A DNA stretch of 56,506 bases, taken from NCBI GenBank assembly GCA_964187785.1, contig CAXLNC010000268.1:1-56506 (forward strand), in the 5' to 3' direction. Positions 23,041 through 50,037 of this stretch are shown piece by piece. Position 1 is the stretch's first letter. The number at the start of each line of letters is the position of its first letter. Under the pieces are notes generated by a model, which saw only the letters and a list, made by a program, of their open reading frames with translations, had not been told where the DNA came from and ran no database searches. The DNA is from Amphiscolops sp. MND2022 (Eukaryota). Both the position numbers and the translations under genes were made by a program.

Positions 23041-23049
23041 AATGATTTA

Positions 23050-27891: not shown

Positions 27892-28747
27892 GCTGAAACG
27901 GAAAGGAAACATAAATTTCTCAATGTTCACGAAATGTTCATTGGCGAAGTGGTGAAAGAGGTTTTCAAACAATTACGACTCGAGTCACCCAGGGTATACC
28001 TTGATACAAGTTTAGGTGGTCATGAATACAACACTAGAAGAAAACAAAAAGGTCTGCTACCTTCTACATACAACAGACTGGTTCTAAAATAGCGTTTTAA
28101 AGTTTAACTAATGTACTCAGAAAAGCCTACAATTGGCTTCATATACTCAATTTAATTCCTCCGGAACTGAGGAACTTTACTGCGGAGCAAGTCACAAAAA
28201 TTGTAAGAAACATAAATGAAGTCTACGTAATCGATAACAAGGAACTATTCGAATTCTTTTTTCTAATTCCACAAAACCTGAAAATTTATTGCGGAATAAA
28301 AAAACGACGTTTGTTGTTCACAGACACAGAAAATTGGTTCTCTTGGGCAAAAGCTCGACGAGCTGGAAAGCTCTTCTTTTGTCCTTTTCTAAAAGATACT
28401 TCCTGAGAAAAAATCCATTTAGAGCCACATTTAGCCACGGAAGCAAAATTGAAACTTTTCCACGTGTTCAAAACGTGTATTTTTGATGGAGGAAGTATCT
28501 AGGAAGTAGATTGAAAGTCGAGATGTCGGACTTGGTAACCTCCTGTAAACAAATTTCACAAATTGGTTAACGAGTCCTTATGCTGTATTTTTAAGGAGGC
28601 ACTCAGCTCATGAGATACATAGTATCCCACTTGACGGGACCCACGACGAGAACGTGGCCTCCGTTGGGTCTCAAAATCTAAATTTTGGGCAAAATAGCTG
28701 TTAAATTATGGAAATCAGATATTGAAATAGGAATTAGATCTAAAACC

Positions 28748-29293
28748 TAGGTCGTTGCAATTTAAACATGTTTTTTTCGTTTTATACGTTTTTTTTTCGA
28801 AAAATGCATGTTTTTTGTTTTTTTCAAAGAAATGCAAAATAACTGCACACAGCCGGTAAAAGAGACAAAGCAAACTGCAAAATCCTTCCAGGAAAGCCCA
28901 TACGTAATCCCAGCTTCCACCATGAGGTTGTAGATGCCTCTTCAAAATTTTCAAAAACACTTGGCGCAAAGGGATCTTCTTTTGCTAAAACTTTCATGAC
29001 TTCAGGCATGATATCGGCCTTACAATGTCGAATCTTTTCAAGGCCCATTACGTTTTCAGATGAAGTAAGCGAAACTAGTAGAAAAAAAAACAAATTAAAC
29101 AACCTTGTTTTTTTCAATGCTGCTTAAGCAGCATTGAAAAAAAAACAATGTTGTTTATTTTGTTTTTCCCCACTACAGTTTCTTTTACCTTCTTTAAACA
29201 AGTGGTTTAAACAAGGGTTTAAAAACATGTTTTGATCAAAACATGTTTTATAACCCTTGTTTAAAACACTCGTTTAAAACAATGCCAACTTTG
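28748..29293 (-). mobile_element. Inverted relative of the 24659 MITE retaining a hAT dimerisation-domain-like fragment
   Basis: Both ends match the 24659 element in reverse. ORF 28824-29117 contains TSWWKLGLRMGFPGRILQFALSLLPAVCS (WW...P..L..A..L-like pattern). RHCKADIMPE sequence is shared with 24894-24923. Confidence 0.6.
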
Positions 29294-30676
29294 AAGTTTT
29301 TCACGTGCTTGAAACGTACGTGTTTTTTGGAGGAAGTCTTAGTGTAGAAAAACCCTGATCAAGTTTGTTCTGCACAACATAAAAACATCGAAACGGGAAA
29401 CTCACCTGATTCCGGAAGTGATGGCTGATGAAGTTGTTTCTCTTTTCAGGAAATTAAGATAAGACGTTTCTGAACAGACAAGATAAACAAAGAAAATCAG
29501 GCGAGCATTTGTGGATATCGTGAATGTGACACAGAATGGCCAGAAGGGACAATAAAAAGGCAACTAAAATGCTTTTTGAATGACAAATGACCGATGGAAT
29601 ACTGAAACTATAAAATAAAGTAACAATAAGGGGCAATATGAAACAACAATACAATAAATCAGCCAAAACTGAAACAATTGAAGTATTTAGAGGGAGAGAT
29701 TAAGTTGATTGAAGTGTTGATAGTGAATTTAGACAATTGAGCAAATCTTAAGGCAATTGAGTACGACTGTATAGCAGTGTAAAGGCAATGTATGAGGTGA
29801 TGGAGTGAATTGATTTCGACCAATCAAATTCGAGCATTCAAAATTACGATAACGTTTCTTTCAACGATTTGAATGTTCCCGGCAATGAGCGAATGGACAA
29901 ACGAATAAATGTAGACAAGGCGTGAACAAATTAGAATGGGTAATTGAAGTTCAATTAAATGTACACGCTTAGTCTGCCAGCTAATGCACTTCAATTTGTC
30001 CATCCAATGTTTATTTAGACACAATTGGACAAAGAAAAATACAGAAAGAAAATCGAATAATATAAAATGAACAAATATATTTCGACATAAAGATTAAATT
30101 TTAGTAGATTAGAACATGAAAAATTATAATTTTATCAAAGGCATACGATTGGCTTAGAGTAGTAGTGAGGTAACTTGAAAACAAAGTTTAATTATCCACT
30201 GAGGTGAAGATGAGTGGTAAAGAACTGAATTGGTTGGCGTACATCATGGAGAAACAGCTGTAACAATGGAAATTTTCTATTAAATCCGAAAAGGGAGGTT
30301 CTAAATACATCTAGGGATTCCAAAAATTGATATGTACACATGCAAGATTGTTCAATGGAAAAATGTTTTGTTTTCGATTTTTGTATTTTTTTGTAAAAAT
30401 TTTTTGATCAGTTATTGGCGTACGTCATAGAGTTTTCGATTTTTGTGTTTTTTCGTAATAAAAATTTTTGACCAGTTATTGGCGTACGTCATAGAGAAAC
30501 AACTGGAGCACTGGTAAATTTAAGTGGTAAACACCTTTAGGATTTGCACTTGAATAAGTTATCCCCAGAGATATGATACATTGGATATTTCACTAGAGCA
30601 AATGAAATGTCATTGGTTGTACGTATACCAGAATAATAATTATTACTCTGGTATATTTGAACTGTAGTATCTGGTA

Positions 30677-30730
30677 AATTTGAATTGTAGTATCCAATGT
30701 ATTAATACATTGGATACTACAATTCAAATT
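30677..30730. repeat. Perfect 54-bp palindrome
   Basis: AATTTGAATTGTAGTATCCAATGTATT|AATACATTGGATACTACAATTCAAATT. Confidence 0.9.
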
Positions 30731-31542
30731 AGGAATTCTAATATTCAAAAGTTGTGTAAGGAAGCCTATTTTCAACAAAATTCAAGTAAGAGTAATAGGA
30801 TTTATAATACAAAGTGTCAAAAAAACTTGTTTTGAGTTTTAGGAAAACTTATCATGCGGGGGGAAACTTTCTGAGGCATTTGTATGCGGATTATACACAC
30901 ATCTGTAATATACATATAAGGAATTCTGGAAACTATCAAAACTAAGGAAACTTGATGCAAATATAATGCATTAACAAGTGGAAAATGTATCAGTAATACT
31001 TATACTTCAATGCATATTGGCTCATAAGGAAAAACTCAGACACGTACATTTACGCGCACTCTGAAAGTTGTATCTTGTAATGTTGTGAAAATTTGCAATT
31101 GAGATATAAAATTTGTTCACACTATTTTTCCTTATGAAGTAACTCGTTTTTGACAGCTTCTTTTTTTGAGTCACAGATCAATTTTGTAGTTAAAATGTCG
31201 AAGTTCGGATTCAACAGACCAGTTGAACGATTTTTTTTTCATTTTGTGTTTTAAAACTTCACATTTGCAGCTAATGTTAGCACTATTTTCTTTATTGTTA
31301 CTAATTATGAAGTGAATTGAAGAACTTGTACATCCAATTCATTCCAACTGGCCCATGGTTTTTTTCAAAAAAGCAATACGCCCCGGAATTTTGACGCGAG
31401 AAGCATGCGATAAATGTGTAGGGTATCACGTTTTCTGTACCTTTCTGATACATTCCCCGTATGTCACTTGAGCGTAATTTGGTTTTAATAAGGGGCATCT
31501 CATCGAAGCTTCTTCTTTTTCAGATCTTGATTTGATTTCCAG

Positions 31543-34089
31543 ATGAAGAAAGCTGCGAGTCAACCTTCAACTCAAAGTCGGAGTTCCCGGTGAGCCGAAT
31601 GAAATTTTCGGAGACTGTTTAGATTGTGCATATATATGCTAATCGTTCAGGCAAAAAGAAAATCCGTTAAGTTTTTTGAATTGTTGGTCACACGCAAAAA
31701 ACCTTCGCTCAGTGACGAGACTTTGATTCTTCAACTTTTTTTATTCTAGCAGGAGATAAAACGGGATTTTTCTGGTACTCGATATCCGATAAATCATTTT
31801 ATACAAACATTTCAACAAATAGTATGTTTCAGACTGGCTGAGTTACGAAGACTGGAGAGCGAGAACTTCGCTCTTCCTAGTGATTATACATTCCTCTTCT
31901 ATTTCGAGCGCGAGAAGAAATTTATGTCCATTAATTGTCAATCTGGCTTCTGGAAAAAGGATTTCACCACTGCCAAAAAATTGCTCTGGAGAAAGGCACT
32001 TATGTTGCTTTCAACAGCATTGGTACTGGCCAATTTCTTTGCAAGGGACCAGTTTTTCTTCTGGAGGCTGTTGCAAAGCATGTTGACGACAAAGTAGATG
32101 CTGGCTTTGACCTCGAAACGCTAGATATTACCATTGCCATGGAGGAAGCAAAAGACCAGCTAGAAAATCGAGAAGAAGAAGAAGAAGAAGAAGAAGGGGA
32201 AGAAGCAGAAGAAGTTGAAAATGAAGATATCAACACAACTTTCCTCCAAGTTAATAACGCGCCCATTGAAAGGAATACTTCCCAGGAGATTTTCGACAAC
32301 GATAATCCCCCAGTTGAGCCACATTTGGAGACACCCACAGCCTCAACCTCCAAAACGTGCCCAACTTGTAACCAATATCTGGATCATAAAAAACAGGTCT
32401 TTGGTTTTTGTTTCATTTGATTGCCGAAAAAAAAACAAAACAGTAATTTTGTTTTTCTTAAATTACTAAGGTCTTACTGTATACATTCATTATTTTGCTC
32501 ATGTATATTTTTCAAAGAAGATGGATGCTGCTTTATTCGTGTATTTTTAAAACATTTTTATTTGATCCTGACATGAAAACAAGTTCTTCAACGATATTTA
32601 TAACTAAAAATTAGTCTAAAAACGTAAATTCAAAAAGCAATAAATCGTCTCATTTTGAAGGGCGACAATTCGTCCCAATTTGAAAAGGTGACAATTTGTC
32701 CCATTTGTATAAGGCAACAATTTGTCCCAATTTGTTCAGTTGATCGGCAAATTTGAAGATTGAAATTGAAGAATTGAACAAAAAAACTACAATTGATTGC
32801 ATTTAAACAAAAATTTACATTACATTCAGGACCTATTGATTGGTGTTACTTGTTGGTACCTGCCTCCAAATGGAATAGATCTGGTTACTTTATTGCAAAG
32901 GTATTGATTGGCAATTAAACTGGGAACGAAGTGACGTTTTTATTGTAGGGGACGATTTCAAGCTTATTGTGAGGTTAATCGTATCAACAGTTCAATTTTG
33001 CTCAGATAATATCCGTTGATGTTATTTAAAATTACAATCGTTGTTTTACATTTGAGGCTTTATTTTTTCCTCAACCTAAGTGATTATGTTTAGAGAGAGG
33101 CGTGGGACAGGTTTACTCACTTGCTAACACGGCTAGAAAGTCGTTTGGATAGGGCGGCGGACATTAAGGAGGAGTCTCTAAAGTTTGCCCGAAAAGCTTT
33201 GAAAGAATTCAACTCTCTTTCAGCCATGTCAAGTCAAAGTTCGTTGAACGACGCTACTGGAAGCCAAACCTCTAATCCTTCAGGCAGGGGTGTTCAATAT
33301 TTTTTTTTCAAATTTTATTATTGCCTAAAACCTAATATATTTTCAGGGAGGACAAAATAAAAACTTTATTATTTTTATTGCTAAAATAATCATTTGTATA
33401 CTCAGCGAAAAACGGATATCAACAAAAACTTAAACCGGCCATCCATAATCAACCAAAACGCGTTGACAGGGCTTTTTTCTTGGACCCTAGGTATTTGACA
33501 AAGGTATTTCCAGAAACTAGCTCAAATTTTCAGTATTTTTGAATTTCATTGGCTGACGAAATGTTGAATCGAACGATCTTATTTTTAGTTATCTCAAGAA
33601 AAATTACTTTTATACTGAAAGGTCCAAAAACAATTTTGATTCATTAGAGCTCTAATTATTAAGTTCTAATATTACGCTAGCGTAAAAATAATTTTTTATT
33701 TTTTTTATTTATTATAATTATTTCTACCCAAAATTGTTTTTTGAACACGCCTGCCTTCAGGAGAAGAAGTGATGTTCAATGGTTTAAATCTTACCAATTT
33801 GAGGGGCGATACTCCTGCTCAGAAGACCAAAAACATTGCTTTGGCCTTGTTCACGACTGACGAGCTGGGAAAAGTGGTTATTGACCCCAGAAAATCGCTG
33901 AATAATTGTTCTCAGCGAGTGCCAGCCGACGAATATCGGACGGAATTGTACAGGAAAGCTGTACGCGTAGCTTTAGGTCAGCATTTTACGACCGACCTGT
34001 ACAGAAATACACTACGTCTTGTGAACCAGATGGGAGTGGACAAAAGTGCCAAGCCGAAACAAAACAAACTCGAAACGAATTATTCTTGA
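31543..34089 (+). CDS. Gene A: about 376-aa protein with poly-Glu tract, coiled-coil-like segment and C-terminal BEN domain (one homopolymer frameshift)
   Basis: Exons 31543-31589, 31833-32396, 33094-33283, 33761-34089 with consistent phases. A 1-bp shortfall in the A6 run at 31975-31980. BEN-like pattern KNIALALFTTDELGKVVIDP...PADEYRTELYRKAV...LVNQMG. Confidence 0.65.
33285..33753. mobile_element. 469-bp hAT-type MITE in a gene A exon, precisely spliceable (GC-AG)
   Basis: TIR CAGGGGTGTTCAA / TTGAACACGCCTG; perfect 8-bp TSD CCTTCAGG (33277-33284, 33754-33761). Confidence 0.92.
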
Positions 34090-34387
34090 AACTTTTGTCA
34101 ATATTTCCGAAAACTTTGTCCGTATTTATTCTTGACATATGAACTTTGCATTAAACTTCCTGTTGTTGACAACATTTGAAACACTTTTGGGCATTTTCTA
34201 CTCGAGCGGATCGTTGAAAAGTTATATGTTCAATGTTCGATTCAATGAGTGTACTTATTATTATTAGTACAAAAGATGTCTAATACGAGTTTCCTACGAA
34301 AGTAGTTGTGTTTTGCGCAGAGAATTTGCATTTTCCCACTCGAATGACTTTTGCAACAATTGATTTAAAGATGAAACTTTTTCAGAT

Positions 34388-35200
34388 ATGTTTGCGGATG
34401 CTGAAACGGTTAACAACCTGATGACCAGAATTGAAAAACTGGAGGAGACCTTGGTTCAATGCGATACCATTGAGATAGAATATAGGAACACCATGCTCAA
34501 AATCTACCAGCATTTCAGGTTGCAGGTTAGCAACAATCTTCAAAATCAATCTTGTCTTTGGAAAAAGAATTTCTGAACTTTTGATTCAAAAAACGCAACT
34601 AGAGAAATTTCAATTGCTCTAGAGTTAGTCTCAAACTATTGAAAGAGTTTAAACTAGAACAATTGTTACTAGAATGAAGATCGCGCGAAAGCATCACAGC
34701 TGAAAGACGTTACCGAAGAACTGTGGTACAATTCAAACAATTTGTTGGAGTATCAAGGTGACAGAACGGACTATCGGAAAGTCGGGAGAGTTCTCGTCAA
34801 AAAAATTTACTCAAAAGAAGAAAGACAGCAGTACAGCTTTTCTCCGAGGAAGCGAGCACCAATGGAAAGATTCCAGCAAGAACCCGCAACTGCTGAAAGT
34901 CTTGAAGCATTCAAAGGTGAGCTACAACTTTTCCCGTTGTGTTTAATTTCTGTCTCCGACTTAACAGTATATACTGTATAGTATATACTTTAGAGTTAGT
35001 AAAAACTCATGTTCCAATATTTTCTATTTTCTCTAGGGTTGATTTTATCATTGCTCTAACTTCGAAGTTAGACCGATGATAAAATCACCCGTGCAGAAGA
35101 TAGAAAATTTTGGAAATTGAACTTTGTGTCTCTAATATCCCGAGAAAAAAAGGAATTTGAATGAAGATGGGAAAACGAAAAAGAGCCGATGTTTAAAGCG
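34388..35200 (+). CDS. Gene B: coiled-coil + BEN-like domain protein (last exon unresolved)
   Basis: TTCAG|AT ATG at 34388. Exons 34388-34525 and 34673-34916 are in phase. RKVGRVLVKKIYSKEERQQYSFS...EPATAESLEAFK fits the BEN pattern. The next exon, from 35037, stops early. Confidence 0.5.
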
Positions 35201-36065
35201 TTTTGGTCAATTGGCCTTTTTAGTTTGTGTGCTCGGGTGATAACCACTTTCGCAGTTATCGGTATGAATAAATCTCGGTTGGACCGCCGCATGAAAGATG
35301 ATCGACAACAGCTGCCCCTCTATTTCTAGCCTGACAGGCAGACTACTGTTGTGATTACTTTTTGTGAGAGATCAGGTACGGTCCAGCCGAGCGGAGAAAA
35401 TACTCTCCTTCCATGAAATGATCAATTGGAGTTTGTTCTATATCTATTTTTTGTTCGAAAAATATTGGTTCAGCGCAGAATGTCAAATGTGGTATTGGTT
35501 TGCGTGCAATACATGTATTTAAAACAAATGAGAAAACTTTTACATATATTTATTTTTTTTTATAGAAAAGCAACCATTTCCCCCCGAAACCTTCGTTTTC
35601 CAATCCACACTGCATGGAAATCAAACGCTAGGTGTAACGCGGATTATATTATCAGTAATTCATTGTATGCTGTTCTGCGCTATTGAACAAGCCTTCCTAA
35701 TTGATGCTACGTACCGGTAGCAAGCAAACAGTACCAGTAGCTAGCATACTTGTTAATTAAGTTTGTTTACAAGTACATACAAGTACAGTAGCGTTGTAAA
35801 CTATAGCAACTCCAATGCTCAAAATTGCAAAGTTCAAGTCCAAGTTTTTTAAAGACTGACACAAACACGAAAAATTGTCAGCTACAAAAAGTTCTTACAA
35901 TTTCATCTAGTTTACAAAAAAGTTTGTTTGAAAATTTTGTGACAAAAATTACAAAAATTAGAAATTGTAAATTAATCAGTCAAAATTTTGACAGTTCAAT
36001 CAAACTTGTACATTTTTTGGAGTTTCACAAAGTTGAAAGAATAATTTTGAAAAATTTTTAGTCTA

Positions 36066-37807
36066 TCATTTTTTTTCGTTTTTAGTTTTTATTTCATCCG
36101 CATTTGGAATGTTTTCATTTCTGTGACGCTTTTTGGACAAATCCGGGACCCGTTGATTTTCAATTGTTTTTACTTTAACTTTCATCGGCATTTGGAATGT
36201 TTTCATTCCTATGACGCTTATTGGACAAATCCGGGACCCGTTGATTTTCAATCGTTTTCACTTTTATTTTCATCCTGATTTGGAATGTTTTCATTCCTGT
36301 GACGCTTTTTGGACATATAAAAATAAAGGTAAAAACGAATCGAAATCAACGTGTCTCGGATTTGTCCGAAAACCCTGGTCGAGAAAAATGCGTTCCTTGC
36401 AAGGATCTTGCAAGCTCCTTGTAAAAATGCAATTACTTGTAAGATCTTGCAAGGAAATTTGTTCCTTGCAAGATCTTGCAAGGAAATGTTTTCCTTGAAA
36501 GATCTTGCAAGGAAATGTTTTCTTGAAAGATCTTGCAAGGAAATGCTTTCCTTGCAAGATTCTTGAGTTCAATGTACTTCATACTGAGAAATTATGTTAA
36601 CGTAGTTGTGATTTGAGAATAATGTCAAAAACGTTAATAACTATTATTTCAGAAGGGTAATTTAACAAATTGAAAAATAATTTCAATCGAAATATTATGC
36701 ACAGTCTAATTTCAAATCAATAACTGGTAAATAACACAAACTGTATTTTAAATGTTGCGTCACTGAAATGTACTACTATTTTTCAAATAACTTCACTATC
36801 ACACTTTTAGAGATAGTTTCTACAGTTTGCATCTTTTTGGTGGTTGAATCCTCTAGTTAGTAAACCCCGTTCTGTGACAGAATCTAATAGTCACGATGCA
36901 GTAGTCAACTTGAAGTCAAAAACAATGAATATAAAAAATAAAAAAAATTGTCGGGAACCTTCCACGAAGTTTTTCTCCTTGGAAGAATATTGCGAGGAAT
37001 TTTTTTTCTTGCAAGATTCTTGCAAGATGTCTTGCAGAAAAATGCATTATCTTGTAAGACCTTGAAAGAAAATCTTGCAAGATCCTTGCAAGGAACGCAT
37101 TTTTTTCTACCAGGGAAGCGTCACAGGATTAAAAACATTCCAAATGCGGATAAAAATAAAAGTAAAAACGAATGAAAATCAACATGCCTCGGATTTGTTC
37201 AAAAAGCGTCAAAGGAATGAAATTATTCCAAATGCGGATGAAAAGGAAATTAGAAACGAATAAAGTCAACGTGTCTCGGATTTGTCCGAAAAGCGTCACA
37301 GAAATAAAAACATTCCAAATGCGGATAAAAATAAAGGTAAAAACGAATGGGAATCAACGTGTCTCGGATTTGTCCAAAAAGCATCAATGAAATGAAACCA
37401 ATCGAAATGCGTATGAAAATGAAAGTAAGAACTAATGAAAATCAAAGTGTCTCGGATTTGTCCAAAAAGCGTCAAAGGAATGAGAACAATCCAAATGCGG
37501 ATGCAAATAAAAGTAAAAACGAAAAAAAAAATCAACGTGTCTCGGATTTGTACGAAAAGCGTGACAGGAATGAAATTATTCCAAATGCGGATGAAATTAA
37601 AATTCGTTTCTTTGGAAGGAGGGTTTTTTCTCCGCTCGGCTGGACCGTACCTGAATTCTCACAAAAAGTGATCACATCAGCAGTCTGCCTGCCAGGCTAG
37701 AAATAGAGGAGCAGCTGTTGTAGATCACCCTTCATGCAGCGGTCCAACCGAGACTAATTTATATTGGTAACTGCGAAAGCTGTTACCATGCTAGAACACT
37801 GTATGAT
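36066..37807. repeat. Back-to-back 87-bp satellite arrays (minus then plus orientation) with conserved tail, split by a CACTA-type MITE
   Basis: Minus-oriented units 36066-36313; orientation switches at about 36315; plus units to about 37600; tail to 37807. Confidence 0.85.
36373..37115. mobile_element. 743-bp CACTA-type MITE
   Basis: TIRs CCCTGGTCGAGAAAAATGCGTTCCTTGCAAGGATCTTGCAAG / reverse complement ending CTACCAGGG. AA TSD: the host unit CCGAAAAGCGTC is restored on removal. Subterminal CTTGCAAG repeats. Confidence 0.9.
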
Positions 37808-38966
37808 ACGGCAAATCGACTGAATGCTACAACAAATCTTGGTTGGGTGTTTTTCAACCACAGTCAATTGTCCGTACTTTTGTTCGTATCAGTTGACAGT
37901 TAATGTTACTAAATATGTATTGACAAGATGTTGCTTAAGCAGTTTTCAGGGTCGACAAGTAAATCGTTTTACTTCCAGATTTTACATGTTTTTGTTTTCT
38001 TTTTGCATAATGACTACGTTATACCAATTGAAGACAAATTCTTTATCAGTAAGTAAATAGGAAACTACATATAGTTGAATGGCTTTCCTGCTTGGCGTAT
38101 TGGACTAGCAGTCCAAAGAACTAGTATACAGCCAATCACAGTGCAGTAATCACTTCGTATAAATATTTAGTCTGGCTAACTGAATGCAGACAAATAGGAC
38201 ATGCGCCGGAAACAGCAACAAACAAATATTTTTCCACAAAAACTTTACACTAGTTCAAGTAAAAGTAAAACCTCTTTCATAATGGGACTATAACGTCTAT
38301 TTTTAAAACAGTTTTTTTGCTTGAACAAAACGTTTTTCATACATTTTGACTATGAATATATTCGTAAAAAGTGTTTATTGATGACTCAAAACAGGAAGCT
38401 GTTGATTTCTTCATCAAAAATGCGTGACTACTTTGGGAGAAAGTGTGAACAAAGTCCGTATCTCATTTCCAAACTGTCATCCTGAGAATATACTTAAAAT
38501 TGAAGCATTCTGGCTCGAATTCAAGTATTTTTAAATCAGATTTTCATTAAATTTACAAACAAACTGGCGGTGGGGGAAAACAGAAAAAAGCCGACGAGAC
38601 ATCACATTGTAACAATATTGAAACTTTTCAATGGCTCAACTTATAGGCTTGAACAAATTATAATTCATACCTGGTTCATTAACAGTATGTATTTTTCTAC
38701 GCAGGTGCTGTTCGAATTCTCTGTGGCACCAGCAGTTATGCCTATCTGAGAGCAAAGGATGGTGCAAATCAAGTTGGACTGGAAGAGCGATACGAGGAAA
38801 TGATGAAAACTAAAACTCCAAACATTAAATGCTCTGAATTTTGAAATATTCTCATTTTGTTTTAGCATTTGCGGGAAAGAAAATCAACTTTACGCATGTT
38901 TTTTTTGCAAAATGCAGAAAAATTAGGATTTATATTTTCTTTTAGCGCGTTGCCATTCTCTATAGC

Positions 38967-39092
38967 CAGGGCTGGGTAAAATACAATAAGTGATTACAAT
39001 ATTTGCAATAATTGTGGAAGCAAAAAAATGATAATTGCAATAACTGTGTACAATGGTAAATATTGAGAGAATATTGATTGTACCCAGCCCTG
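38967..39092. mobile_element. 126-bp hAT-type MITE
   Basis: TIR CAGGGCTGGGTA / TACCCAGCCCTG; 8-bp flanks TCTATAGC / GCTATAGC (7/8). Confidence 0.85.
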
Positions 39093-39310
39093 GCTATAGC
39101 ACTATCTTTTCTGATAAGAAAAAAAGTGCTCTAATTTTTCCGCATTTGAAAACTTTGGCTTTGAGCCCCTTCCCTCTGTTGAGAAAAAGAAAGAACTAAA
39201 TAGGAAATACCGCATAGGGTACTTTCCGTTGAGAAAAAGAATTATTGTATCAACTTTGCTCCGAATTTGTCACGGTTCTTATTAGCTCAGCTGTAAATTT
39301 GTTTTCAGAG

Positions 39311-39826
39311 ATGTCGAATATCACCGCAGTCAAAAACGTCAATTGGAAAAAGCTGGCTGCAGTTGATGCATCCCTTACCAGTGAAGTTATAGATTCTTGT
39401 GGAATTAGAACACACAAAATTCAAACAGAGTTTACAGCTAACGAGGATTCAGTGATTGTGGAATCCTACCTGAGGACGCAATATTTAACAGCAAAAAACA
39501 CGTTGTCGTTTAAACCAGTGAATTACTTGACCTCGGAAAACTACACCCCAATGGGCGTATTTGCGAAAAAACCGTTTCCTGAAGGTAGTAAAATTGACGG
39601 CCTAACAGCTTTTTTATCGAAGATGCCGGAGGAAGAAGTCAAGGAAGGTGAGAATGATTTTTCACTGATAGAGAGTGGGCGGTTGGGACGACAGTGGCTG
39701 ATGCTTGGACCGCTAGCATTTGTAAATGCTTCTTGTAAGCCAAACATAGAGTATAAGCATGAAGGTAATCAATGGTGGGAACAACCCAAACTTCAAATCT
39801 TTTCATTTTTCGGAAATACTGAATAA
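39311..39826 (+). CDS. Suv4-20/KMT5B-C-like SET domain gene (SET1), 3' part of the domain missing
   Basis: [26 protein letters not shown] parallels Suv4-20 [59 protein letters not shown] parallels [33 protein letters not shown]. Candidate donor AAG|GTAATC after 39764; no next exon found. Confidence 0.8.
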   Translation: [171 protein letters not shown]

Positions 39827-40777
39827 GAAAACAATCTGAAACAGGGTTGTTGTGTTTTTAAACATTTGTTTTTCAACACCTGTTTTTAACATAATATTTA
39901 ACGTTTTTCAACCATGATTTTTCAACATATTTTCAACACCCTCAATGAATCATTTGTATTTCAGAGAAGAAAAAGCAAATTTGACAATGGAACGTTTATC
40001 AGCTCAAATTGAAATGGTGTTTTCCACCATTGGCTTTGCGTACATTGATAAAAGAAACAGATTTGGGCTGCAAAAATGGCTATTGTCCTTCGCCCCTTGC
40101 GTTGTGATGTTGTTTTATTTCAACGACGTTCTTAACTTTCTCTCAATTTTTAAGTGTTTTTAACTTTATTTAACGTTTTTAACGCTTTTGAACGTCAAAA
40201 TGTTTTCAACGTGTAAAAAATACAACCCTGATCTGAAATCTGAAATACAATTTTCAAAAAAAAACAATTTCCAATTTCAATTTTCACTTTCACAAATAAT
40301 TGTTTCCCTCCTTTGAAGGTAATATCATGCTTTAAAATGTCATCGAAGACATCCGAGAAGGAGCCGAAATTGTAGTCTATTATCATAAACATTACTTTGG
40401 CGACTTCAATGTTAATTGCTTGTGCCCCTTCAAGTCTAAGCATCGTGAATATTTCACCGACAATTTACCAAGGACGAGAATAGCAAAAAAACGCAAAACT
40501 CATGAAATACTCATCTTCGTATGTCAAAGATTAAAAACTTCATCTGAAGATTTCAACTACTTTTTGCCCATTACCTTGGCAATTTTTAAATGCTCAGTTT
40601 ATTTTTATTAGTATTCGTATGCTGAATATACTGAAGAAGAAAATATCATACCAATACCGAACAATAATTGAATTTGTTCACAACAGGTCCGCTCAAATTT
40701 AAACTTTGGTCATTTTTTACTTGAAACTCACATGAAAGTTTATAACTATAGTTATAGCGTCTTCTTCCATTTCAGAT

Positions 40778-43700
40778 ATGTCTGGCAACATCGTCATTCC
40801 TTGGCGAAAACTGAGAACGATAGATAGCTCTATTTGGAAGCAGACTGTCGTTGACAACATAGATTTCACAACAGAGATGTCAACGAGTACGAGTGAGTAG
40901 ATATCTAGTGATAAACATATATAAACATATAAACATTATCGGAGACTCAAATTCGAAAATTGTTTTTGAAAAAAAGGAAAAACGAGAAATGAAGTAATCA
41001 AATGAACATCATTCAAACGACTGCGAAGCTTTTGATTATTATTGATAAGTATTACTCAAGTCCTCGTATTTACAAGAAAAATATCGAAATTTCAACGAAA
41101 ATAGAAAAAAAGATATGAGTTTTTGAAATGCAGTTTGTCTTGAAATATTTTTTCAGGTACATCTGGCGACGATGATTTGTTGAGAAAGTTTCTCTCATCA
41201 GAGTATGGTATCTTCCGAGAATTATTTCAACATAAGCAATGCAGTGGAGTCATCACCAGACAGCCGTTAGAAAAAAATGTGATGCTATCAGGATTGATAG
41301 GCGTTGTTGCCTCGATATCTACTGAAGAATTTCTGGAACAACAACAAAAGGACTTCATGGTCTACAGAAAAAGAGAAGAAGAGGAGTTGTTTCTGCTTTG
41401 AGGGCCTTTGTCATTGGTTAGAAACTCATGTACACCCAATGTTGACATTATAAAGTCTGGAAATGTTTTGTCCTGCCAACCTACCAGACATATTAGCGCT
41501 GGTGAAGTAATTTCGCCAGGATTTGATGTTTTTCATTCAAAAGAGTACAGTTTCAGCGGAAAAGAAAATTTAGATACAGTAAGTCTTTTGTCACAACAGA
41601 CTTTAATGGGCTCTCCAGTTCCAGTGAAACGACCGTATTTTCTCTCATCGACTCCTTTACATCGTGTTCGTGATCCTTTACATCGCTTCTCAATCAACGT
41701 ATCTCGAGTTGAAGAACAAACACCGGAAGACGATACAGACGAAGAAGAACTTCTGAACTATGATGACGTTTTTGGTGATTATGGCAACCGAAGTGATGAG
41801 CGTTTAATCAGTATCGAGGACAGCAACAGTATTGCCCAAAACAACAGCGAGACCCAAGACGATACAGCAGAAAATCAACCAGATAATTTCATTCTGGAAG
41901 AAGACATACGAAGTAAGTTTATTTACTTTGCTATAGCCTTTTCGACAACCCGTTTGTCGGAATACTATTGTCTGATTTTCAAATTACCACTAGGTGTACA
42001 GTAATACACTGGTAACTACATGTACAGCGAATTAAAAAAAAACATCAATTTCCAAATAACATTCTGTTCATATTTTGCCATGAAAGTTACATTGAGGAAA
42101 CTTGCAATTTTTTTTCAAAATTTCAATAAACCAAACTTTTCAGCGAAAATATTAGTTTTTAAAGAAAAAATTAATGGTTTTTGTTCTAACTTTGTGATTC
42201 GCATTTTCGGGACGTAGCATTAGGATTATATCAACACAGTGGATGTTAACAAAAACTCTAAAATTACGATTTAAAAATCATACTTATATTTGGAATTCTT
42301 CATTTTTTGAGGAAACGATCAAGCATCAGACTCAACTGGAGACCCTGGCAAGCTACCCGGCGAACCACCTGGCGAAACACCTGGCGAACTACCAATTGTT
42401 CATGGATCAGCACATTCAGTTTCTTCTTTCATGAGAAACCTCCAATCCTTCCATATTAGACATAAAACTTCCAAAGTTGCTCAGAAAGAATTGTTACGCC
42501 TAATCAACAATTTTTTTGGTCCTCTCCAGATCTCATCAGAATGTTACTTGGAGGAAAAACCTTGTCTCACTGTTTTCGACTTCGCAGATTGCAAGTTAAT
42601 CTGTGTAGACGCTGTAAAACAACTCCAGTTTTTGATAAACAGAAGTTTTCGTCATATTGAGAAATCTTGGCATGCTGATTGCGATTTCCAAATACCACAT
42701 TACCCGATGAAAAAAGGTGAGATTCAGCTAAATCTAAATTTGGATGGAGTGCCTATTTTCAAGTCTCGGAAATTCAGCATTTGGCCTTTCTGGTTACAAG
42801 TTGTTAATTTGCCTCCAAAACTGCGGTCATCTTTCAAAAACAACCTTTTGTTAGGATTGTGGCAAGGGATCTCAAAACCTGATTGGGAAACGATTTTACC
42901 AAAAATTAGCTTTGAGATGGAATCTTTGGAGAAACCGAGTTTCAACGAACATATCGGAACATTCAAATGTAAATTTTGTCTACTAATCTGCGACATGCCT
43001 GCAAAAGCTGCTGCTTTGAACATGAATCAATTTAATGGTTTTAATGGGTGCACCCATTGTTTGATGATTGGGAAAAGAGAAGATCATCGCACGTTATACC
43101 CTTGTACGGATAACGCTCCCTTAAGAGATGAAAAAAGTTTTTCGCAAAATGCTAAGAAAGCCGAGGAAACCAAAAAAAGTTGTCGCTGGCATCAAAGGGC
43201 AGTCTTTTCTCAAGTCACACTTCGCTTTTCCCTGGGATGCTCCAGTTGACCCGATGCATCAGATTTATCTAGGCACAGGAAAATCTCTGAAAAAGCTTTT
43301 CGTATCGAGCTTGAAAAAATTTGAATTATCAACATTGAATACATTTTTGCAAATTTTAAGAATACCCAATGAGTTCCTCCGTCGCCCAAAGAAAGTTGAA
43401 GAGATTTCATATTGGAAAGCTGGTGACTTCAAACTTATGTTTTTACACATGATTCCGCTGATCATTGGCCAATTCAAAAGTCTTGCTGATGAAAAGAAGA
43501 AAAAGTATCAAAAGTTTTCTTTAGCTGTTCGGTTATTGTCCCTGAAGCAGGTTCGTGAGGAACATGTGAAGGAAGCTTCTTCTCTGATTCAATCCTTTTT
43601 TTCCAACTTCACGGAGATTTACGGAACAAATATGCAATCGTATAACTTTCATTCAATGCGACATTTGTGTGATCAAGTTCGACGAGTGGGACCTCTTCGG

Positions 43701-44276
43701 AACACATCAGCTTTTTCTTACGAATCAGCCAATCATTTTCTTGTCAAAAATGTGGCGGGTACAGTAAAATCACCAGAAGCTATCGTCGAGGCTTTTTTGA
43801 AATCTAAAGAAGTGTTCATTTGTGATGATACCGAACCAGATTTTGAAACTTTGAAAAAGTTTTCGAAAGTTTCTACTGATTGTCACAACTTCTGCAAAAT
43901 ATTCCCAGGTCAACAAGACTTTTTTGGTCGCTTCCGTACTCCTGACGGAGTAATTCTATCCTCTTTGTCCTACTCAAGGCCGAACGACAATGTGTCAAAC
44001 TGCGTTATTCAAACAAGAAGTGGGATTTTTGTACAAGTGGAAAGTTATCTTTCCATTGAATCTACTTTGTTTGCAATTGTCCGTACATTTCGGAATGTCA
44101 AAACCTTTGACGAGTTACCACGCAGTTTGCAAACTAATTTTTTGTATCGTTTAGAAGATCTAGGGCCACTAGAGAGAATTAATACGGATCAATTGGCGTA
44201 TAAATGTGTTCTGATTGAGTTGCAAAGTGGGACATTTCTTGCCAGTGTTGTTAAAGAAGGATTCGAACATAATTGA
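40778..44276 (+). pseudogene. Predicted SET2-CACTA/CMC transposase fusion gene (about 945 codons; one premature stop, one +1 homopolymer indel)
   Basis: Exons 40778-40892, 41157-41912 and 42312 (or 42330)-44276 are in phase. SET motifs GPLSLVRNSCTPN and RHISAGEVIS. TGA at 41399-41401; extra A in the A7 run at 43172-43178. Confidence 0.6.
42431..44276 (+). CDS. CACTA/EnSpm (CMC superfamily) DDE transposase domain, split by one frameshift
   Basis: LNLDGVPIF, WP..LQVVNLPPKLR, LLGLWQG..KP, CDMPAKA, FNGFNGCTHC, PVDPMHQIYLG, WKAGDFK, YNFHSMRHL, GPLRNTSAFSYES: the conserved CMC motif series including D, DxxH and E. Confidence 0.9.
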
Positions 44277-45218
44277 ACTTTGAAACAAGAGTAATTATTT
44301 TTCGAGAAGAGTACTTAGACGTCTATTGTTGTTCACAAATGAAGTTGTAACTTTTTTAATGGACAAACCATTTTCAGAATCATTTGATGATCATTAACAC
44401 GAAGGATGAAAACTTCGACACTCTTTCGTAAGTTGAATTCGATTGATCTGACAATTGCAATCTAAAATAGTTTTTGTTTTCGTTTTTCTACTGATAAAAT
44501 CCTGTTTTTATTTTAGCACTTACTCTCAGGTATTGATCCGGATCAGGCCCGCCTATACATCAGTCGGAGTCGCAATTTCTAACAAAAAATGCAGAACCTC
44601 TCGCGGTAAGTTTGACCAAAAATTGAGACACAAGACTTTCATAATCCCTCTCGTTTTTTTTGAAATCTAGACATCTTTTCATCATTTTCCATAGAAAACG
44701 ATATAATCATTATAAAAGGATCATATTATAAAATGTTCATTAAGAAATGATGATAAAATCGGCTCTTTTTCCTTTTCCTCCCCACACTTTTCAAAGAAAA
44801 CAAACTCAACATAAAGGATTATATTTGACTATATCATTCAATATTTCTTCGAATAAAACTTTTCCTTTGTTTTGTTGTGTCCACACTATTAGAGTAGGTT
44901 TCCGCTTGAACAAAACATTGTTCACACAATTTGACTAATTATGTTCGTATTGAGTGATGACTCAAAACAGGAAGCTGTTGATTTCTTCATCAAAAATTCG
45001 TAACTACATAGGAAAAAGTGTGAACAAAGTTTGTATCTGAATCCTAAACTATCCCCCTGAGACTAAATTTAAAACAACTGTTTCATTGGAAACGTAATTG
45101 AGATATATTTAATTGCAAAAACATCATCTTGAAAAGTGTAGGGGGGAAAGGAAAAGTTCCATAAACTCAATATATAAAATGATATTCCGCAAGATGACTG
45201 ATTTGGAAAGCAAATTTC

Positions 45219-45629
45219 GGCTCTTTTCTGTTTTCCCCCCCACCACCAAAATTTTTGAAAATAACTTTCCTTAAAAACTTTATACTAGCCTAATTAAAAG
45301 CAAAACATTCTTTCATAACAGGAAGATAACTTCTATTAGAGTAGTTTTCCGCTTGAACAAAACATTGTCCACGCTTTTTGACTATAATTATGTTCGGATT
45401 AAGTGTTTATTGATGACTCAAAACAGGAAGCTGTTGATTCTTCATCAAAAATGCGTAACTACATATTGAAAAAAGTGTGAACAAAGTTTGTATCTGAATC
45501 CTAAACTATCACCCTGAGAATAAATTTGAAACTGAAGCTTTCTGGTTTGTATTCAAGTCTATGTGTTATAAGATTTTCAATAATTTTCCAAAAAAAATTT
45601 GGTGGTGGGAGGGAAAACAGAAAAGAGCC
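45219..45629. mobile_element. 411-bp MITE, GGCTCTTTTCTGTTT family
   Basis: Long TIR including CCACCACCAAA; perfect 8-bp TSD CAAATTTC. Confidence 0.92.
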
Positions 45630-46155
45630 CAAATTTCTGAAATTTTGGACAACGTGTACACTACGTGAGCGACCTCAATTAGGCGAAGCCGAGACAAGAA
45701 ACGAGACAACTACTACTCGCATCCAATACTGACGTCACTGACGAGTCCGCGCGACAGAAGGCAATTACAGCGTAATGTAATGTAATGTATATACTGGTGA
45801 CGTCGATTATAATAGCGACGTCACAGAGCAACTTGAAGAAACAAATTATTCCACGTGTCTCTGTTTTGTCCAAAAAGCGTCAAAGAAATGAAAACATTCC
45901 AAATGCGGATGAAAAAAACAGTAAAAACGATTGAAAATCAACGTGTCTCGGATTTGTCCACAAAGCGTCACAGGAGTGAAAACATTCCAAATGTTTTTTT
46001 TTCGTTTGATTTTTTTCGTTTTTTGGCACTATGCGACTTTTTTTTCGAAAATTTTTGGGTTCTATCAAAAAGTAACCCCTTGCATTTTTTTGTTGAAGTT
46101 TTCGGTTTGTAAAAACGTTTAATGGGCCTGAATGGCCTCTTTTTGAGTTTTTCGA

Positions 46156-46572
46156 GGCTCTTTTCTGTTTCCCCCCCCCCCCACCACCAAGTTTTTTTTT
46201 GAAAACTAGTGAAAATCTAATAACAAATAGACTTGGATACAAACAAGAAAGCTTCAGTTTTAAATTTATTCTAAGGGTGATAGTTTAGGATTCAGATACA
46301 AACTTTATTCACACTTTTTCCCTATGTAGTTACGCATTTTCGATGAAGAAATCAACAGCTTCTTGTTTTGAGTCATCAATAAACACTTGATACGAACATA
46401 ATCATAGTGAAAATGTGTGAACAATGTTTTGTTCAAGCGGAAAACTACTCTAATAAAAGTTAACTTCCTGTTATGAAAGAAGGTTTTACTTTTAACAAGG
46501 TTAGCCTAATGTTTTTAAGGAAAGCTATTTTCAAAAAATTTGGTGGTGGGGGGGGGAAAACAGGAAAGAGCC
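46156..46572. mobile_element. Inverted copy of the GGCTC MITE family (no TSD); partial copies at about 38220-38590 and 44810-45070
   Basis: Same TIRs; the interior is the reverse complement of 45219-45629. Confidence 0.8.
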
Positions 46573-46574
46573 AA

Positions 46575-47275
46575 AAGTAAAAACGATTGAAAATCAACGT
46601 ATCTCGGATTTGTCCAAAAAGCGTCACTGGAATGAAAACATTCCGAATGCGGTTGAAAAAAAAGTAAAAACGATTGAAAATCAACGTGTCTCGGATTTGT
46701 CCACAAAGCGTCACAGGAGTGAAAACATTCCGAATGCGAATGAAAAAAAAGTAAAAACGATTGAAAATCAACGTGTCTCGGATTTGTCCACTAAGCGTCA
46801 CAGGAATGAAAACATTCCAAATGCGGATGAAAAAAAAGTAGAAACGATTGAAAATCAACGTGTCTCGGATTTGTCCAAAAAGCGTCACAGGAATGAAAAC
46901 ATTCCAAATGCGGAAGAAAATAAAAGTGAAAACTAATGAAAATCAACGTGTCTCGGATTTGTCTGAAACGCGTCACAGGAATGAAAACATTCCAAATGCG
47001 GATGAAAATAAAAGTAGAAACTAATGAAATCAACGCGTCTCGGCTTTGACCAAAAAGCGTCACAGGAGTGAAAACATTCCGAATGCGAATGAAAAAAAAG
47101 TAAAAACGATTGAAAATCAACGTGTCTCGGATTTGTCCAAAAAGCGTCACAGGAATGAAAACATTCCAAATGCGGATGAAAAAAAAGTAAAAACGATTGA
47201 AAATCAACGTGTCTCGGATTTGTCCAAAAAGCGTCACAGGAATGAAAAAACATTCCAAATGCGGAAGAAAATAAA
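46575..47275 (+). repeat. 87-bp satellite array, about 8 units (short array also at 45855-45990)
   Basis: A 29-codon unit SKKRHRNENIPNADEKKVKTIENQRVSDL repeats in ORF 46610-46936. Confidence 0.92.
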
Positions 47276-48404
47276 ACTCAAAACCAGAGAAATTTCTCTG
47301 ATTTTTACTTTCATTTAGAATTTTAATAGTAATTTTATTTACTTTTTCATTAACGAATTCTTACTTTTCTTCATTGACAATTGTTACTTTTTTCCGATAT
47401 TCCAAGCACGGTAATAACTCCTTCGATGAGAGAATTATTTGCATCCCTTGAACACGAACAATAGTCAATTTCCGTTTCTTCAAAGAGTACAACTACTAGG
47501 AAGAATTCAAATAATAAATTGTTAACTCAGGACTCATGCAGTAATTACAGGCATAACAAACATATGTAAGATGTGAGGACAGAAAAACAAATGTAAATAT
47601 AAATGGTAGCAATTTTATAAATACAATTTTTGATAGCAAGTTTGTGTTTTCGGTTCTTTGTTTATGTTCAAGTCGAGCCAATCGGGTGAAGAAACTCAAA
47701 GAGACCCTAACTGAGCCAAACACATTATACATTGAAGGTAAGTGCAGAAGTTAACCGAAAACACCCGAGATGCATTCATGCCTTTCAAAATGTTGACAAA
47801 TCCACTGAGTCTTTTTTAGGATTGTTGAAGACATGTCTGCAGGCGAATTTCAGTCGAGGCAACTCAGCTTGAACAACTAAAACAAGTAAAACAATACCAA
47901 CTAGAATGAACCTCAAAACGGCTGCAAAATGAATAACGTAAAAGTTATTGACACTGCAGTTGAACGTGTTTTTTGCGTTACTCATTTTGCAGCCGTTGTT
48001 AGGTTCATGATTACATTCAACTAATTTTTTGTTCAGTCGCGCTGTCCAGAATTCCTTTCAGCCAATCATGTTTTGCATCATGTTATCACCATACTACAAA
48101 GTGTCATCTTAAGTTTGCTATTCCAGAACTACAGCACCGCAGATACGTCTCGACTCGAGGTCAATTTAAGCTGACATAGAGACAACAAGGAACATGGAAC
48201 TAAGTAAGTTCACTTTTGCTCCTTTTCGGTAGCCTTCGATTGTTTCGTAGTTCATTCCTGAAGCGAATTCCAGCAGAAGTAACAATATTCTCAAAATTGG
48301 GAATAACATCTAAAAAATGGGAATAATGTCTAAATATTGAGACGTTACTGCTGAAAATTGAATGATATTTAGACGTCTAGATTTGGATCTTTTCTGTCAA
48401 TCCC

Positions 48405-48566
48405 CCCACAGTAAGCGCGAAAAATTTTAATTCCCCAACACTCCCCGGTAAAATTGTTCCTTTAGACGTATTTCCTCATAAAATTTGATAGACTTTTTAA
48501 ATTTAAACTTCTATAGACGTTATTATAATAACGTTGAGGAATTAAATTTTCCCCGCTTACTGTGGG
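48405..48566. mobile_element. 162-bp MITE with CCC termini
   Basis: CCCACAGTAAGCG / CGCTTACTGTGGG with imperfect extension to about 35 bp. No clear TSD. Confidence 0.6.
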
Positions 48567-49200
48567 TGGTGGGGGAGGCTAATAAATAGACAAGATTTGT
48601 GATCACCATGTTTCATAGTATGAGGAACGTTGAATTCTAGATTGAAAGTCGAACGTTTCTTTCTCTCCAATGTGATCTCTCTCTGACACGGGCGGACTGG
48701 AACAAAACATTTGTAAAAGAAGTACCACTGCAAGAGAAGCCTTTCGTATTTTCGAGTTAGTGAAACATTTCTTGAATCCGTGACGCCCCCCACCGCGGCT
48801 AGTTAGTACTTATAAGCAAATGCCGTATGGGAAAAATATCAAATGTTTGCATATGAATTATTGCAACTACAGCATACTTTTGCAAACTTTGACCTGCTAA
48901 TTTGTATTAAGAGGAAATTATTCAAATCAACGCAAAGGACATGTCAACATGATAGTATTGGAACCTTGTGTACCATATTATTGGCAAATTAGCATGTTTT
49001 TTTTCTATTATATCCCTTTCGGGCAAAATTGGGACTTTCAAAACAGTTTACCAATTTTCAATTATTCAATTCAATAAAAAAAAATAATCAATATATTAAA
49101 CGAAAACAAAGTTGAGATCTTATTATATTACAACTAATTCATTCGTTATTCCTCACTATTTTGAAAATTAACTATGTGTCTTATCCCCCAATAAACTATA

Positions 49201-50037
49201 ATGTGACCAAAGTTTTTGAAATATGATATGTTTATTCTAGAACACTCGGTTTTGGGAGCTGCACATTTGCCACAATTGTGATCTAGGACAGTCGCTTGAG
49301 AGCCGTGCCCTAACTTGCGAGGATCTTGATGAAGGAGCTACTCAAATGTACATGTACCGTGAGATGAAACATACGTCAGTGCATCCAGAAAATGTACAGT
49401 TGTAAACAATTTCTGCTACTGCTAAATAAAAGGTGCAGCCCTGAAGGTAGTGTTTTTCTCATGAAGACGGAAGCAGCAGACTACCTGCAGAGTGATTTGG
49501 ACGACGAGTGATTCGTCGAAGTTTGGACATTCGGTCCACTTGACAGCAACAACAAACTTGAATCACATATGTCGAACGAACTCTTATTCTTTGAATACGT
49601 GTACATATTTATCTTTATCTTCATCTATATTTGTTTTGCTGAAGCTGTAAAAATCTTTCATTTGGAAATTTTCAGACTCCTTTTCCAATTTACTTTCAAG
49701 ATTCAAGCATTTTCTTCCAAGTTACTCTCAAGGTTCAGGCATTTTCTTCCAAGATACTTCCAAGATCAGGCATTTTCTTCCAAGTTACTTCCAAGATCAG
49801 GCATTTTCTTCCAAGTTACTTCCAAGATCAGGCATTTTCTTCCAAGTTACTTCCAAGATCAGATATTTTCTTGCAAGATCTTACAAGACCAGACATTTTC
49901 TTGCAAGATCTTGCAAGACCAGACATTATCTTCCAAGATCTTCCAAGATACCTGCAAGAATAATGCATTGTCTTCCAAGATCTTGGAAGTGAAATCTGAC
50001 AGATTCTTGCAAGACATGTATGGGAGTTCGACTGGGG
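49201..50037 (+). repeat. Right end of the large element: direct-repeat segment, CTTCCAAG/CTTGCAAG subterminal array, right TIR
   Basis: Homology to 14121-14620; tandem TTCCAAGATCAGGCATTTTCTTCCAAG units; ends GTATGGGAGTTCGACTGGGG at 50037. Confidence 0.9.

Follow-up and report, generated by a model that had tools for sequence, protein, structure and literature searches.

A Suv4-20-like SET domain and a CMC transposase in one putative gene of a large DNA transposon from Amphiscolops

Introduction

The described protein closest in plan to the one discussed here is SETMAR (Metnase) of anthropoid primates, in which an N-terminal SET domain is joined by splicing to a C-terminal DDE transposase. 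Histone methylation at DNA breaks by SETMAR is proposed to assist repair (PMC2847698, PMC9062482), and SETMAR H3K36me2 has been reported in break repair (PMC2847698). The present analysis concerns a stretch of 56,506 nucleotides from Amphiscolops sp. MND2022 (GenBank assembly GCA_964187785.1, contig CAXLNC010000268.1, positions 1 to 56,506 of the forward strand), referred to throughout as the window. It holds a large DNA transposon with a free SET gene, SET1, and a second SET domain, SET2, that lies upstream of the transposase and can be joined to it in frame by conceptual splicing. SETMAR is a single-copy domesticated host gene that combines a SET domain of another class with a mariner (Hsmar1) transposase. 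In contrast, the gene in the window belongs to a multicopy, apparently mobile element, with a Suv4-20-like SET domain, a transposase of the Chapaev-Mirage-CACTA (CMC) superfamily, and relatives that encode the fusion in a single open reading frame (ORF).

Chromatin enzymes are already known as cargo of transposons, and SETMAR demonstrates that a protein combining SET and transposase can function in cells. In Phytophthora, HarbingerS and MuDR transposons have acquired SET genes (Kojima & Jurka 2014, Repbase Reports, as cited in PMC12730594), and these too are autonomous DNA transposons with a SET histone methyltransferase. Going by the statement of the citing paper, those elements belong to other superfamilies and to oomycetes, whereas the element described here is a CMC transposon in an animal-type genome, with a fused SET domain and a free copy. 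Genes for TET/JBP dioxygenases reside on KDZ/CACTA-like and other fungal DNA transposons (PMC12730594), a further case of an enzyme of epigenetic marks carried by a DNA transposon. The TET/JBP enzyme modifies DNA bases and is usually encoded by a separate gene, whereas here a histone-lysine methyltransferase domain would lie inside the transposase polypeptide.

The element resembles other members of the CMC superfamily (Yuan & Wessler 2011, as cited in PMC4079192) in its homology to Transposase_21 (tnp2), DUF1258 and DUF4218, its large size and its subterminal repeat arrays, and possibly in a short target site duplication (TSD; perhaps 2 bp). It differs in termini that read CCCCAGTCG... instead of CAC(TA)..., in a length of 36.6 kb with several cargo genes, and in the fusion of a SET domain to the transposase. 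A full-text literature search returned no SET-CMC fusion and no Suv4-20-like SET domain in any transposase; Repbase Reports lies outside that search, and a prior description there is possible. As far as searched, the SET-CMC transposase architecture is undescribed, in agreement with the initial annotation of this DNA, made from the sequence alone, which knew of no CACTA equivalent of SETMAR. New within that search is an autonomous, apparently mobile element with a Suv4-20-like SET domain inside the transposase polypeptide. For the window alone the picture is more sobering, consisting of a dead copy, a degenerate fused SET domain and a putative splice.

The SET-transposase fusion in relatives and in the window

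A protein database search with an intact transposase returned proteins of ~1000 aa in which an N-terminal Pfam SET domain precedes the same transposase in a single uninterrupted ORF. These include P0008 (1008 aa, on a contig of ERZ21837714), P0016 (982 aa, SRR31017046), P0040 (1006 aa, on a 396-kb contig of ERZ25071359) and P0041 (982 aa, ERZ27289422); the SET domain is present as well in P0043 to P0045. The Pfam SET scores of the relatives P0008, P0016, P0040, P0034 and P0039 range from 31.7 to 47.6 bits, above the PF00856 gathering threshold of 22.4 bits. Within the Amphiscolops genome (1.07 Gb, 1929 contigs searched), families whose transposases are 44-45% identical to that of the window (L016, L025 and L027) encode both domains without interruption over at least 882 aa, and L026 and L029 have a SET domain just upstream of the transposase. 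The search for further proteins combining SET with a CMC transposase, which the initial annotation had proposed, was therefore productive on four public assemblies and in the genome itself. On these comparisons, the SET-CMC transposase architecture is real and ancestral.

In the window family, the gene is divided into three exons (Table 1). Direct reading of the sequence bears out the splice arithmetic of the initial annotation together with its coordinates for the ATG, donors, acceptors, TGAs and stop. The first donor, CGA|GTGAGT at 40892/40893, is in phase 1 and is matched by the acceptor TTTTTTCAG|G at 41156/41157. The second, CGA A|GTAAGT at 41912/41913, is also in phase 1 and is followed by three acceptors in the transposase frame, which are TTTTTTGAG|G at 42311/42312, AAG at 42323 and CAG|A at 42329/42330. 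An in-frame TGA (42308-42310) directly precedes the 42311/42312 acceptor, and the gene stops at 44274-44276. With intron 2 retained, the SET2 frame would end at 42002-42004. Intron 2 measures 378-398 bp among the copies and 399 bp in the window, and the introns of the SET genes have a GC content of 0.27-0.31 versus 0.37-0.43 for the exons. Since a phase match is expected by chance with a probability of ~1/3, the splice arithmetic alone proves little, and its strength derives from the other copies and the relatives.

The C-terminal piece of the transposase matches 13 further places in the genome at 82-96% protein identity, plus many distant families. The SET2 piece matches the same 13 places with unchanged spacing to the transposase, so that the linkage of the two, proposed from a single copy, is present in every copy. 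Splice sites and phases are conserved across the copies, including the ~10%-diverged C12/C7 subfamily. The conceptual three-exon coding sequence is open over 944 aa in five of ten near-identical copies and over 928 aa in a sixth; the remaining four have private frameshifts.

The 944-aa product is colinear over its full length, module by module, with the single-ORF proteins of the public assemblies and with the fused frames of L016, L025 and L027. The shared modules are, in order, an N-terminal region with W...EYG, the SET core, a linker with STP, DP.HRF and Y[DE].VFG.Y, a variable acidic stretch, the block P-[LI]-x-x-G-S...F, and the transposase. Intron 2 lies within this acidic stretch, and its retention would produce a linker ~130 residues beyond that of any relative, with stops. 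The conserved P-[LI]-x-x-G-S...F block, here P-I-V-H-G-S, lies upstream of ATG 42431, the first ATG of exon 3; in the 40 codons between the stop at the acceptor and this ATG, the frame has no further ATG.

In intact copies the transposase has an open frame of 654 codons, in which the first ATG, equivalent to 42431, would give a protein of 614 aa. DUF1258 is matched at 36.8-38.2 bits (Pfam cut-off 33.1), while Transposase_21 (tnp2), at 17.9-19.6 bits, and DUF4218, at 17.7-19.8 bits, both stay under their cut-offs. The homologues P0017, P0018 and P0021, which match the query at E 4e-45 to 9e-26, do pass Transposase_21, and the three DDE-bearing motifs, LDGVP, CDMPAKA and YESANH, are conserved and intact. 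By these matches the transposase is of CMC (tnp2) type, as the initial annotation had it.

The copy in the window carries several lesions. A run of seven A at 43172-43178 has six A in all 12 other copies, and one A fewer also in DNA contigs of four sequencing runs. This extra A causes a +1 frameshift that splits the transposase into ORFs at 42431-43249 and 43128-44276, and the continuous transposase frame assumed at first does not hold for this copy. In SET2, the TGA at 41399-41401 had been described as standing at a Leu-aligned position; this is true of the more distant relatives only, and all 12 other copies have TGT (Cys). SET1 has a TAA at 40333-40335 where the others have TGT. Taken together, the TGA in SET2, the transposase frameshift and the TAA in SET1 indicate that the window copy is dead.

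Several further readings of this region were considered and rejected. The three introns of the SET genes are not introner-like, as they have no similarity to the miniature inverted-repeat transposable elements (MITEs) at 16209-16659 and 33277-33761 and no terminal inverted repeats (TIRs). In-frame AGs are overrepresented after 42311 owing to those codons of the acidic linker that begin with G, and not to selection. An isoform joining SET1 exon B (donor 40518) to 41600 would preserve the frame, but conservation of its donor does not extend to C12/C7; joining the same donor to an acceptor at 40775/40776 loses the frame, with a stop following almost immediately.

The start codons of SET1 and SET2 each lie 2 nt after a consensus acceptor in all copies (TTTTCAG|AG ATG at 39305-39313 and TTTCAG|AT ATG at 40770-40780). 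This arrangement suggests 5'-untranslated region (UTR) introns or leader (trans-)splicing, perhaps with an operon-like layout inside the element.

The fused and the free SET domains

The Suv4-20 enzymes KMT5B and KMT5C are H4K20 di- and trimethyltransferases (PDB 4au7, 3rq4, 3s8p, 4bup) and provide the best profile and fold matches to the SET domain of the element. Alone, SET2 of an intact copy reaches 14.1 bits (E 0.065) against PF00856, under the threshold, and its phmmer matches are SET proteins. A profile (A1) built from SET2 together with the relatives matches SUV420H2 at E 8.2e-40 and KMT5B (SUV420H1) at 2e-38, within matches spanning 8e-40 to 3e-37; the next SET class, represented by KMT2C, follows at 3.8e-13. 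In the AlphaFold2 (AF2) model of SET2, confidence (pLDDT) averaged in blocks over residues 1-125 is mostly 77-97 (one block 67), and confidence is low beyond ~125, the C-terminal half being predicted to be disordered. Foldseek comparison of this model with the PDB gave 247 matches at E<=0.001, of which the best 50 all belong to SET or PR-domain proteins, with SUV420H1/2 in the first 13 places. On profile and predicted fold, SET2 is Suv4-20/KMT5-like, which upholds the class first assigned to it.

The Suv4-20 motifs NDFS...LGP..F.N..C.PN and GEE..V.Y...FFG..N..C.C are common to SET1 and to the fused SET domains of relatives. The transposon SET domains mostly read NASC where Suv4-20 reads NHDC, although P0040 and P0016 retain NHSC, and their post-SET motif is C-x-C-P-x4-H as opposed to C-x-C-x2-C. 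SET2 lacks these motifs. The NH motif that binds S-adenosylmethionine, F.N[HA]SC.PN in relatives, reads LVRNSCTPN in SET2. At the catalytic Tyr motif, GEE..V.Y..HFFG in relatives, SET2 has GEEISPGFDVFHSKEY, with a 4-residue insertion and no Tyr; the GEE..V.Y position itself reads GEEISPGFDVFH. The post-SET Cys motif, C.CP....H in relatives, is replaced by ETVSLLS. The identity of SET2 is 24-30% to the SET domains of relatives and 23% to SET1. The fused SET2 is thus degenerate and probably non-catalytic, with only the N-terminal two-thirds of the predicted SET fold kept.

SET1 lies upstream as a separate gene with one intron, the removal of which restores colinearity with the continuous SET domains of relatives (Table 1). 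It retains the motifs of catalysis and zinc binding and carries GVFA, NASCKPN, EIVVYYHKHYFG, CLCP and KKRK. Its conceptual splice yields an open protein of 213-248 aa in four of six copies, and its stop lies near 40505 in most copies and at 40611 in the window. Exon A with read-through scores 16.6 bits against PF00856, also under 22.4. SET1 is 36-49% identical to the SET domains of relatives, paralleling the transposase. From its motifs and the purifying selection on it, SET1 is likely the methyltransferase, supplied in trans.

Selection on SET1, SET2 and the transposase

Selection was assessed only from differences that are fixed between C12/C7 and the 11 copies of the main subfamily, thereby excluding private decay. 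The transposase counts 18 synonymous to 10 nonsynonymous substitutions in its N part (omega 0.13, P 3e-7) and 15 to 8 in its C part (omega 0.15, P 9e-6). SET1 exon A, compared with C12, counts 11 to 5 (omega 0.13, P 9e-5). The corresponding figures are 0.5 to 8.5 in SET2 exon 1, 0 to 3 in the 40 codons before ATG 42431, and 6 to 21 in SET2 exon 2, where omega is 0.93 and not significant, the substitutions being few, the power limited and the 95% range estimated from the counts ~0.4-2.8. SET2 exon 2 differs from the transposase by Fisher's test (P 7e-4). On these counts the contrast is clear, with SET1 and the transposase under purifying selection and SET2 not detectably so.

The reading frame of SET2 tells a different part of its history. 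Both subfamilies, and most copies, keep its 290 codons and the two junctions open, despite a divergence far above that of SET1. Neutral change of that extent should, by estimate, yield many stops and frameshifts, which argues that SET2 has been read as protein for most of its history.

Interpretation and alternative explanations

The evidence tips modestly towards the transposase gene of a slightly damaged copy of a young, ~36.6-kb CMC (Mirage/CACTA-like) transposon, whose intact copies would be spliced into a 944-aa SET2-linker-transposase protein, with SET2 relaxed and SET1 serving as the enzyme. The ancestor would have encoded a Suv4-20/KMT5-like SET domain, an acidic linker and a DDE transposase together in a single ORF. 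This ancestral gene would have gained introns, two of which interrupt it in the window family. The SET module may then have been duplicated, after which the enzyme was retained in the free SET1 and the fused SET2, under relaxed constraint, became a non-catalytic module at the N-terminus. Intact copies would be spliced 40892>41157 and 41912>42312 or 42330. If so, the constraint on SET1 and the relaxation of SET2 after duplication would amount to subfunctionalisation within a transposon.

Marking of chromatin by the fused SET domain, as the initial annotation envisaged, is unlikely, with its catalytic and zinc-binding residues lost and no detectable constraint on it. SET2 could act at most as a tether to chromatin or the H4 tail, or as a partner of SET1. 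The module as a whole may couple cut-and-paste transposition to H4K20 methylation by either of two routes. The first would be a choice of target chromatin via H4K20 methylation; the second, by analogy with SETMAR, would be the marking of the excision or integration break for H4K20me2- and 53BP1-dependent repair.

A wider proposal is made tentatively and is doubtful as a whole. It holds that the transposases of a widespread clade of animal CMC transposons begin with an active Suv4-20-like H4K20 methyltransferase domain, and that in the element described here a free SET1 and a tethering pseudo-SET2 couple transposition to H4K20 methylation. If true, the clade would be a transposon-borne counterpart of the domesticated SETMAR. 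The family offers natural material for asking if a transposase can write or read H4K20 methylation for the choice of targets or for break repair, ranging from single-ORF fusions through an intron-split fusion to a free SET duplicate beside a decaying fused one.

Several points weigh against the favoured reading of a CMC transposon gene spliced into a SET2-linker-transposase. The fixed-substitution test detected no purifying selection on the SET2 exons or on the 40 codons before ATG 42431. Given this lack of constraint upstream, the transposase could now be made alone from ATG 42431. The first acceptor of intron 2 is a disfavoured GAG. The only matching sequence runs, none of them RNA, are four DNA runs of one sample, whose contigs span both introns and lack the 41912>42312 joint, and they are no test of splicing. 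The exons cannot claim support from their indels: one fixed in-frame indel in exons 1-2 versus 11 in the two introns between subfamilies was considered as a sign of frame preservation and rejected, because private indels in young copies show intron 2 to be ~10x more indel-prone, owing to homopolymer hotspots. Finally, CMC elements typically have the termini 5'-CAC...GTG-3' (PMC4079192), and the CCCC... termini of this element depart from that hallmark.

A possible, though rather unlikely, alternative is gene fission. In this case a 399-bp insertion would have broken the fusion, leaving SET2 as a separate, fast-evolving protein that ends within the supposed intron (42002-42004) and the transposase as a separate protein of 614 aa from ATG 42431. 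The transposase would be expressed from its own promoter, or another leader would be joined to the 42311 or 42329 acceptor. Fission would account for the sharp change in constraint at ATG 42431, with omega 0.13-0.15 downstream versus ~1 upstream, and for the weak GAG acceptor. The gene-caller product P0001 corresponds to the 614-aa form, and the TTTCAG acceptor-like sites 2 nt before the SET1 and SET2 ATGs raise the prospect that leader or 5'-UTR splicing is usual in the element. However, ATG 42431 comes after the conserved P-I-V-H-G-S block, and the GTAAGT donor and the three acceptors that follow it all match in phase and are retained in both subfamilies. Moreover, the omega test depends on few substitutions, its range for SET2 exon 2 reaching from ~0.4 to 2.8.

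It is improbable that SET2 is an untranslated relic, consisting of dead exons of the ancestral fusion, with only SET1 and the transposase functional. An omega of ~1 would suit such a relic, as would the disappearance of the NH, catalytic Tyr and post-SET Cys motifs, the predicted disorder of the C-terminal half of the domain, and an identity to the SET domains of relatives of 24-30% versus 36-49% for SET1. Against this stand the 290 open codons over two exons with intact splice sites, in both subfamilies and most copies; by estimate, neutral divergence beyond that of SET1 should have left many stops and frameshifts.

A single-copy host SET gene that captured a transposase, equivalent to SETMAR, would share the SETMAR domain order of an N-terminal SET and a C-terminal transposase joined by splicing, yet this notion, implied by the SETMAR-like architecture of the initial annotation, is refuted by at least 13 near-identical copies on 10 contigs inside 37-bp TIRs, plus dozens of derivatives, which mark the locus as a multicopy transposon gene.

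Ends, copies and other contents of the element

The coordinates of the element and its features are collected in Table 1. The TIR sequence occurs at two places only within the window, 13451-13487 and 50001-50037. In DNA comparison, homology with other copies extends from at least 33149 through exactly 50037, and the flanks differ beyond this point. In at least eight other copies, 28.7-30.9 kb separate the left end from the transposase downstream of it. At least 40 left ends show 98-100% identity, and short derivatives are among them. The element copies, at least 13 in number, are 94-99% identical, the near-identical ones being spread over 10 contigs, and dozens of derivative copies accompany them. 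The element is young, apparently mobile and probably recently active.

Table 1. Coordinates in the window of the transposon, its SET and transposase genes and its partner-gene exon
Feature	Position	Strand	Remark
Whole element, 36.6-kb DNA transposon	13451..50037	+	Bounded by TIRs; copies diverge after 50037
Left TIR (CCCCAGTCGAACTCCCATACAT...), 37 bp, 1 mismatch vs right TIR	13451..13487	+	Inverted recurrence of right end
Exon of partner gene ("BEN-like" label unconfirmed)	33763..34053	+	Homology to metagenome contig genes
SET1 exon A, N-terminal region and SET core to NASCKPN	39311..39764	+	ATG 39311
SET1 intron (GTAAT...GAAG), GC 0.31	39765..40318	+	Splicing restores colinearity with continuous SETs of relatives
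SET1 exon B (EIVVYYHKHYFG, post-SET CLCP, KKRK)	40319..40611	+	End set by poly-A run length
SET2-transposase exon 1	40778..40892	+	ATG 40778; TTTCAG acceptor-like site ends 2 nt upstream of ATG
Intron 1 (GTGAGT...TTTTTTCAG), GC 0.27	40893..41156	+	Acceptor shifted 6 nt, in frame, in C12/C7
Exon 2, degenerate Suv4-20-like SET2 (~41157-41560) and acidic linker with STP, DPLHRF and YDDVFGDY motifs	41157..41912	+	
Putative intron 2 (GTAAGT...TTTTTTGAG), GC 0.29	41913..42311	+	Alternative in-frame acceptors 42323, 42329
Exon 3, linker end and DDE transposase (DUF1258, Transposase_21, DUF4218)	42312..44276	+	First in-frame ATG 42431
Right TIR	50001..50037	-	Last 37 bp (...GAGTTCGACTGGGG)

The termini read 5'-CCCCAGTCG...CGACTGGGG-3' in the window, with the same sequence at the right ends of five other copies. 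TT flanks the window copy at both ends, so that a 2-bp TSD is possible from this one copy; the right flanks of five other copies begin AT, AA, TA, AA and AA. A pattern search for the empty insertion site gave no match.

At 36.6 kb, the element is very long for a transposon of the cut-and-paste kind, and at least eight copies share its internal layout. Arrays of a ~88-bp tandem repeat occur in both orientations at 19757-20082, 22609-23043, 36068-36318, 37116-37602 and 46573-47292; in a copy on contig C6 near 13.73 Mb, such an array has grown to ~3 kb. A GC-richer block at 23.5-28 kb contains minus-strand ORFs of 464, 373, 193 and 175 aa. Pfam searches with the large minus-strand ORFs of this block and with the ORF at 31935-32420 gave no matches.

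The exon at 33763-34053 is 48-52% identical to a gene located directly upstream of the SET-transposase ORF on two mutually unrelated metagenome contigs (L059:1310-1936 and L060:873-1481). From this placement it looks like a partner gene conserved in SET-transposase elements; its product has no Pfam match, BEN included. Single-ORF relatives have in addition a small downstream ORF (L058:3174-3716 and L059:6204-6644; 35% identity between the two) with a faint GDSL-lipase-like match and no counterpart in the window element.

Shortened copies with internal deletions also occur. In a deletion derivative, L011 (G000:C6:60223389-60227528), the equivalent of window position 16453 is joined to that of 42905. 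A ~720-bp sequence at G000:C7:52417848-52418569 has the left end and an inverted terminus close together and is MITE-like.

Divergence from C12/C7 over window positions 40200-44400 is mosaic. It amounts to 16-19% upstream of ~41120, 4% in SET2 exon 2 and intron 2, 6-12% at synonymous transposase sites and 0% just 3' of the transposase, and the synonymous divergence pS varies along the element from 0 to 0.19. This mosaic pattern points to exchange among lineages of the element by recombination or gene conversion.

Other repeats make up the flanks, indicating that the element inserted into repeat-rich DNA, and their identifiable content comprises retroelement fragments only. Two near-identical ORFs of 156 aa lie 3.1 kb apart (8714-9184 and 11832-12302), and a gag-like ORF of 281 aa with a zinc-knuckle-like end occupies 55412-56257.

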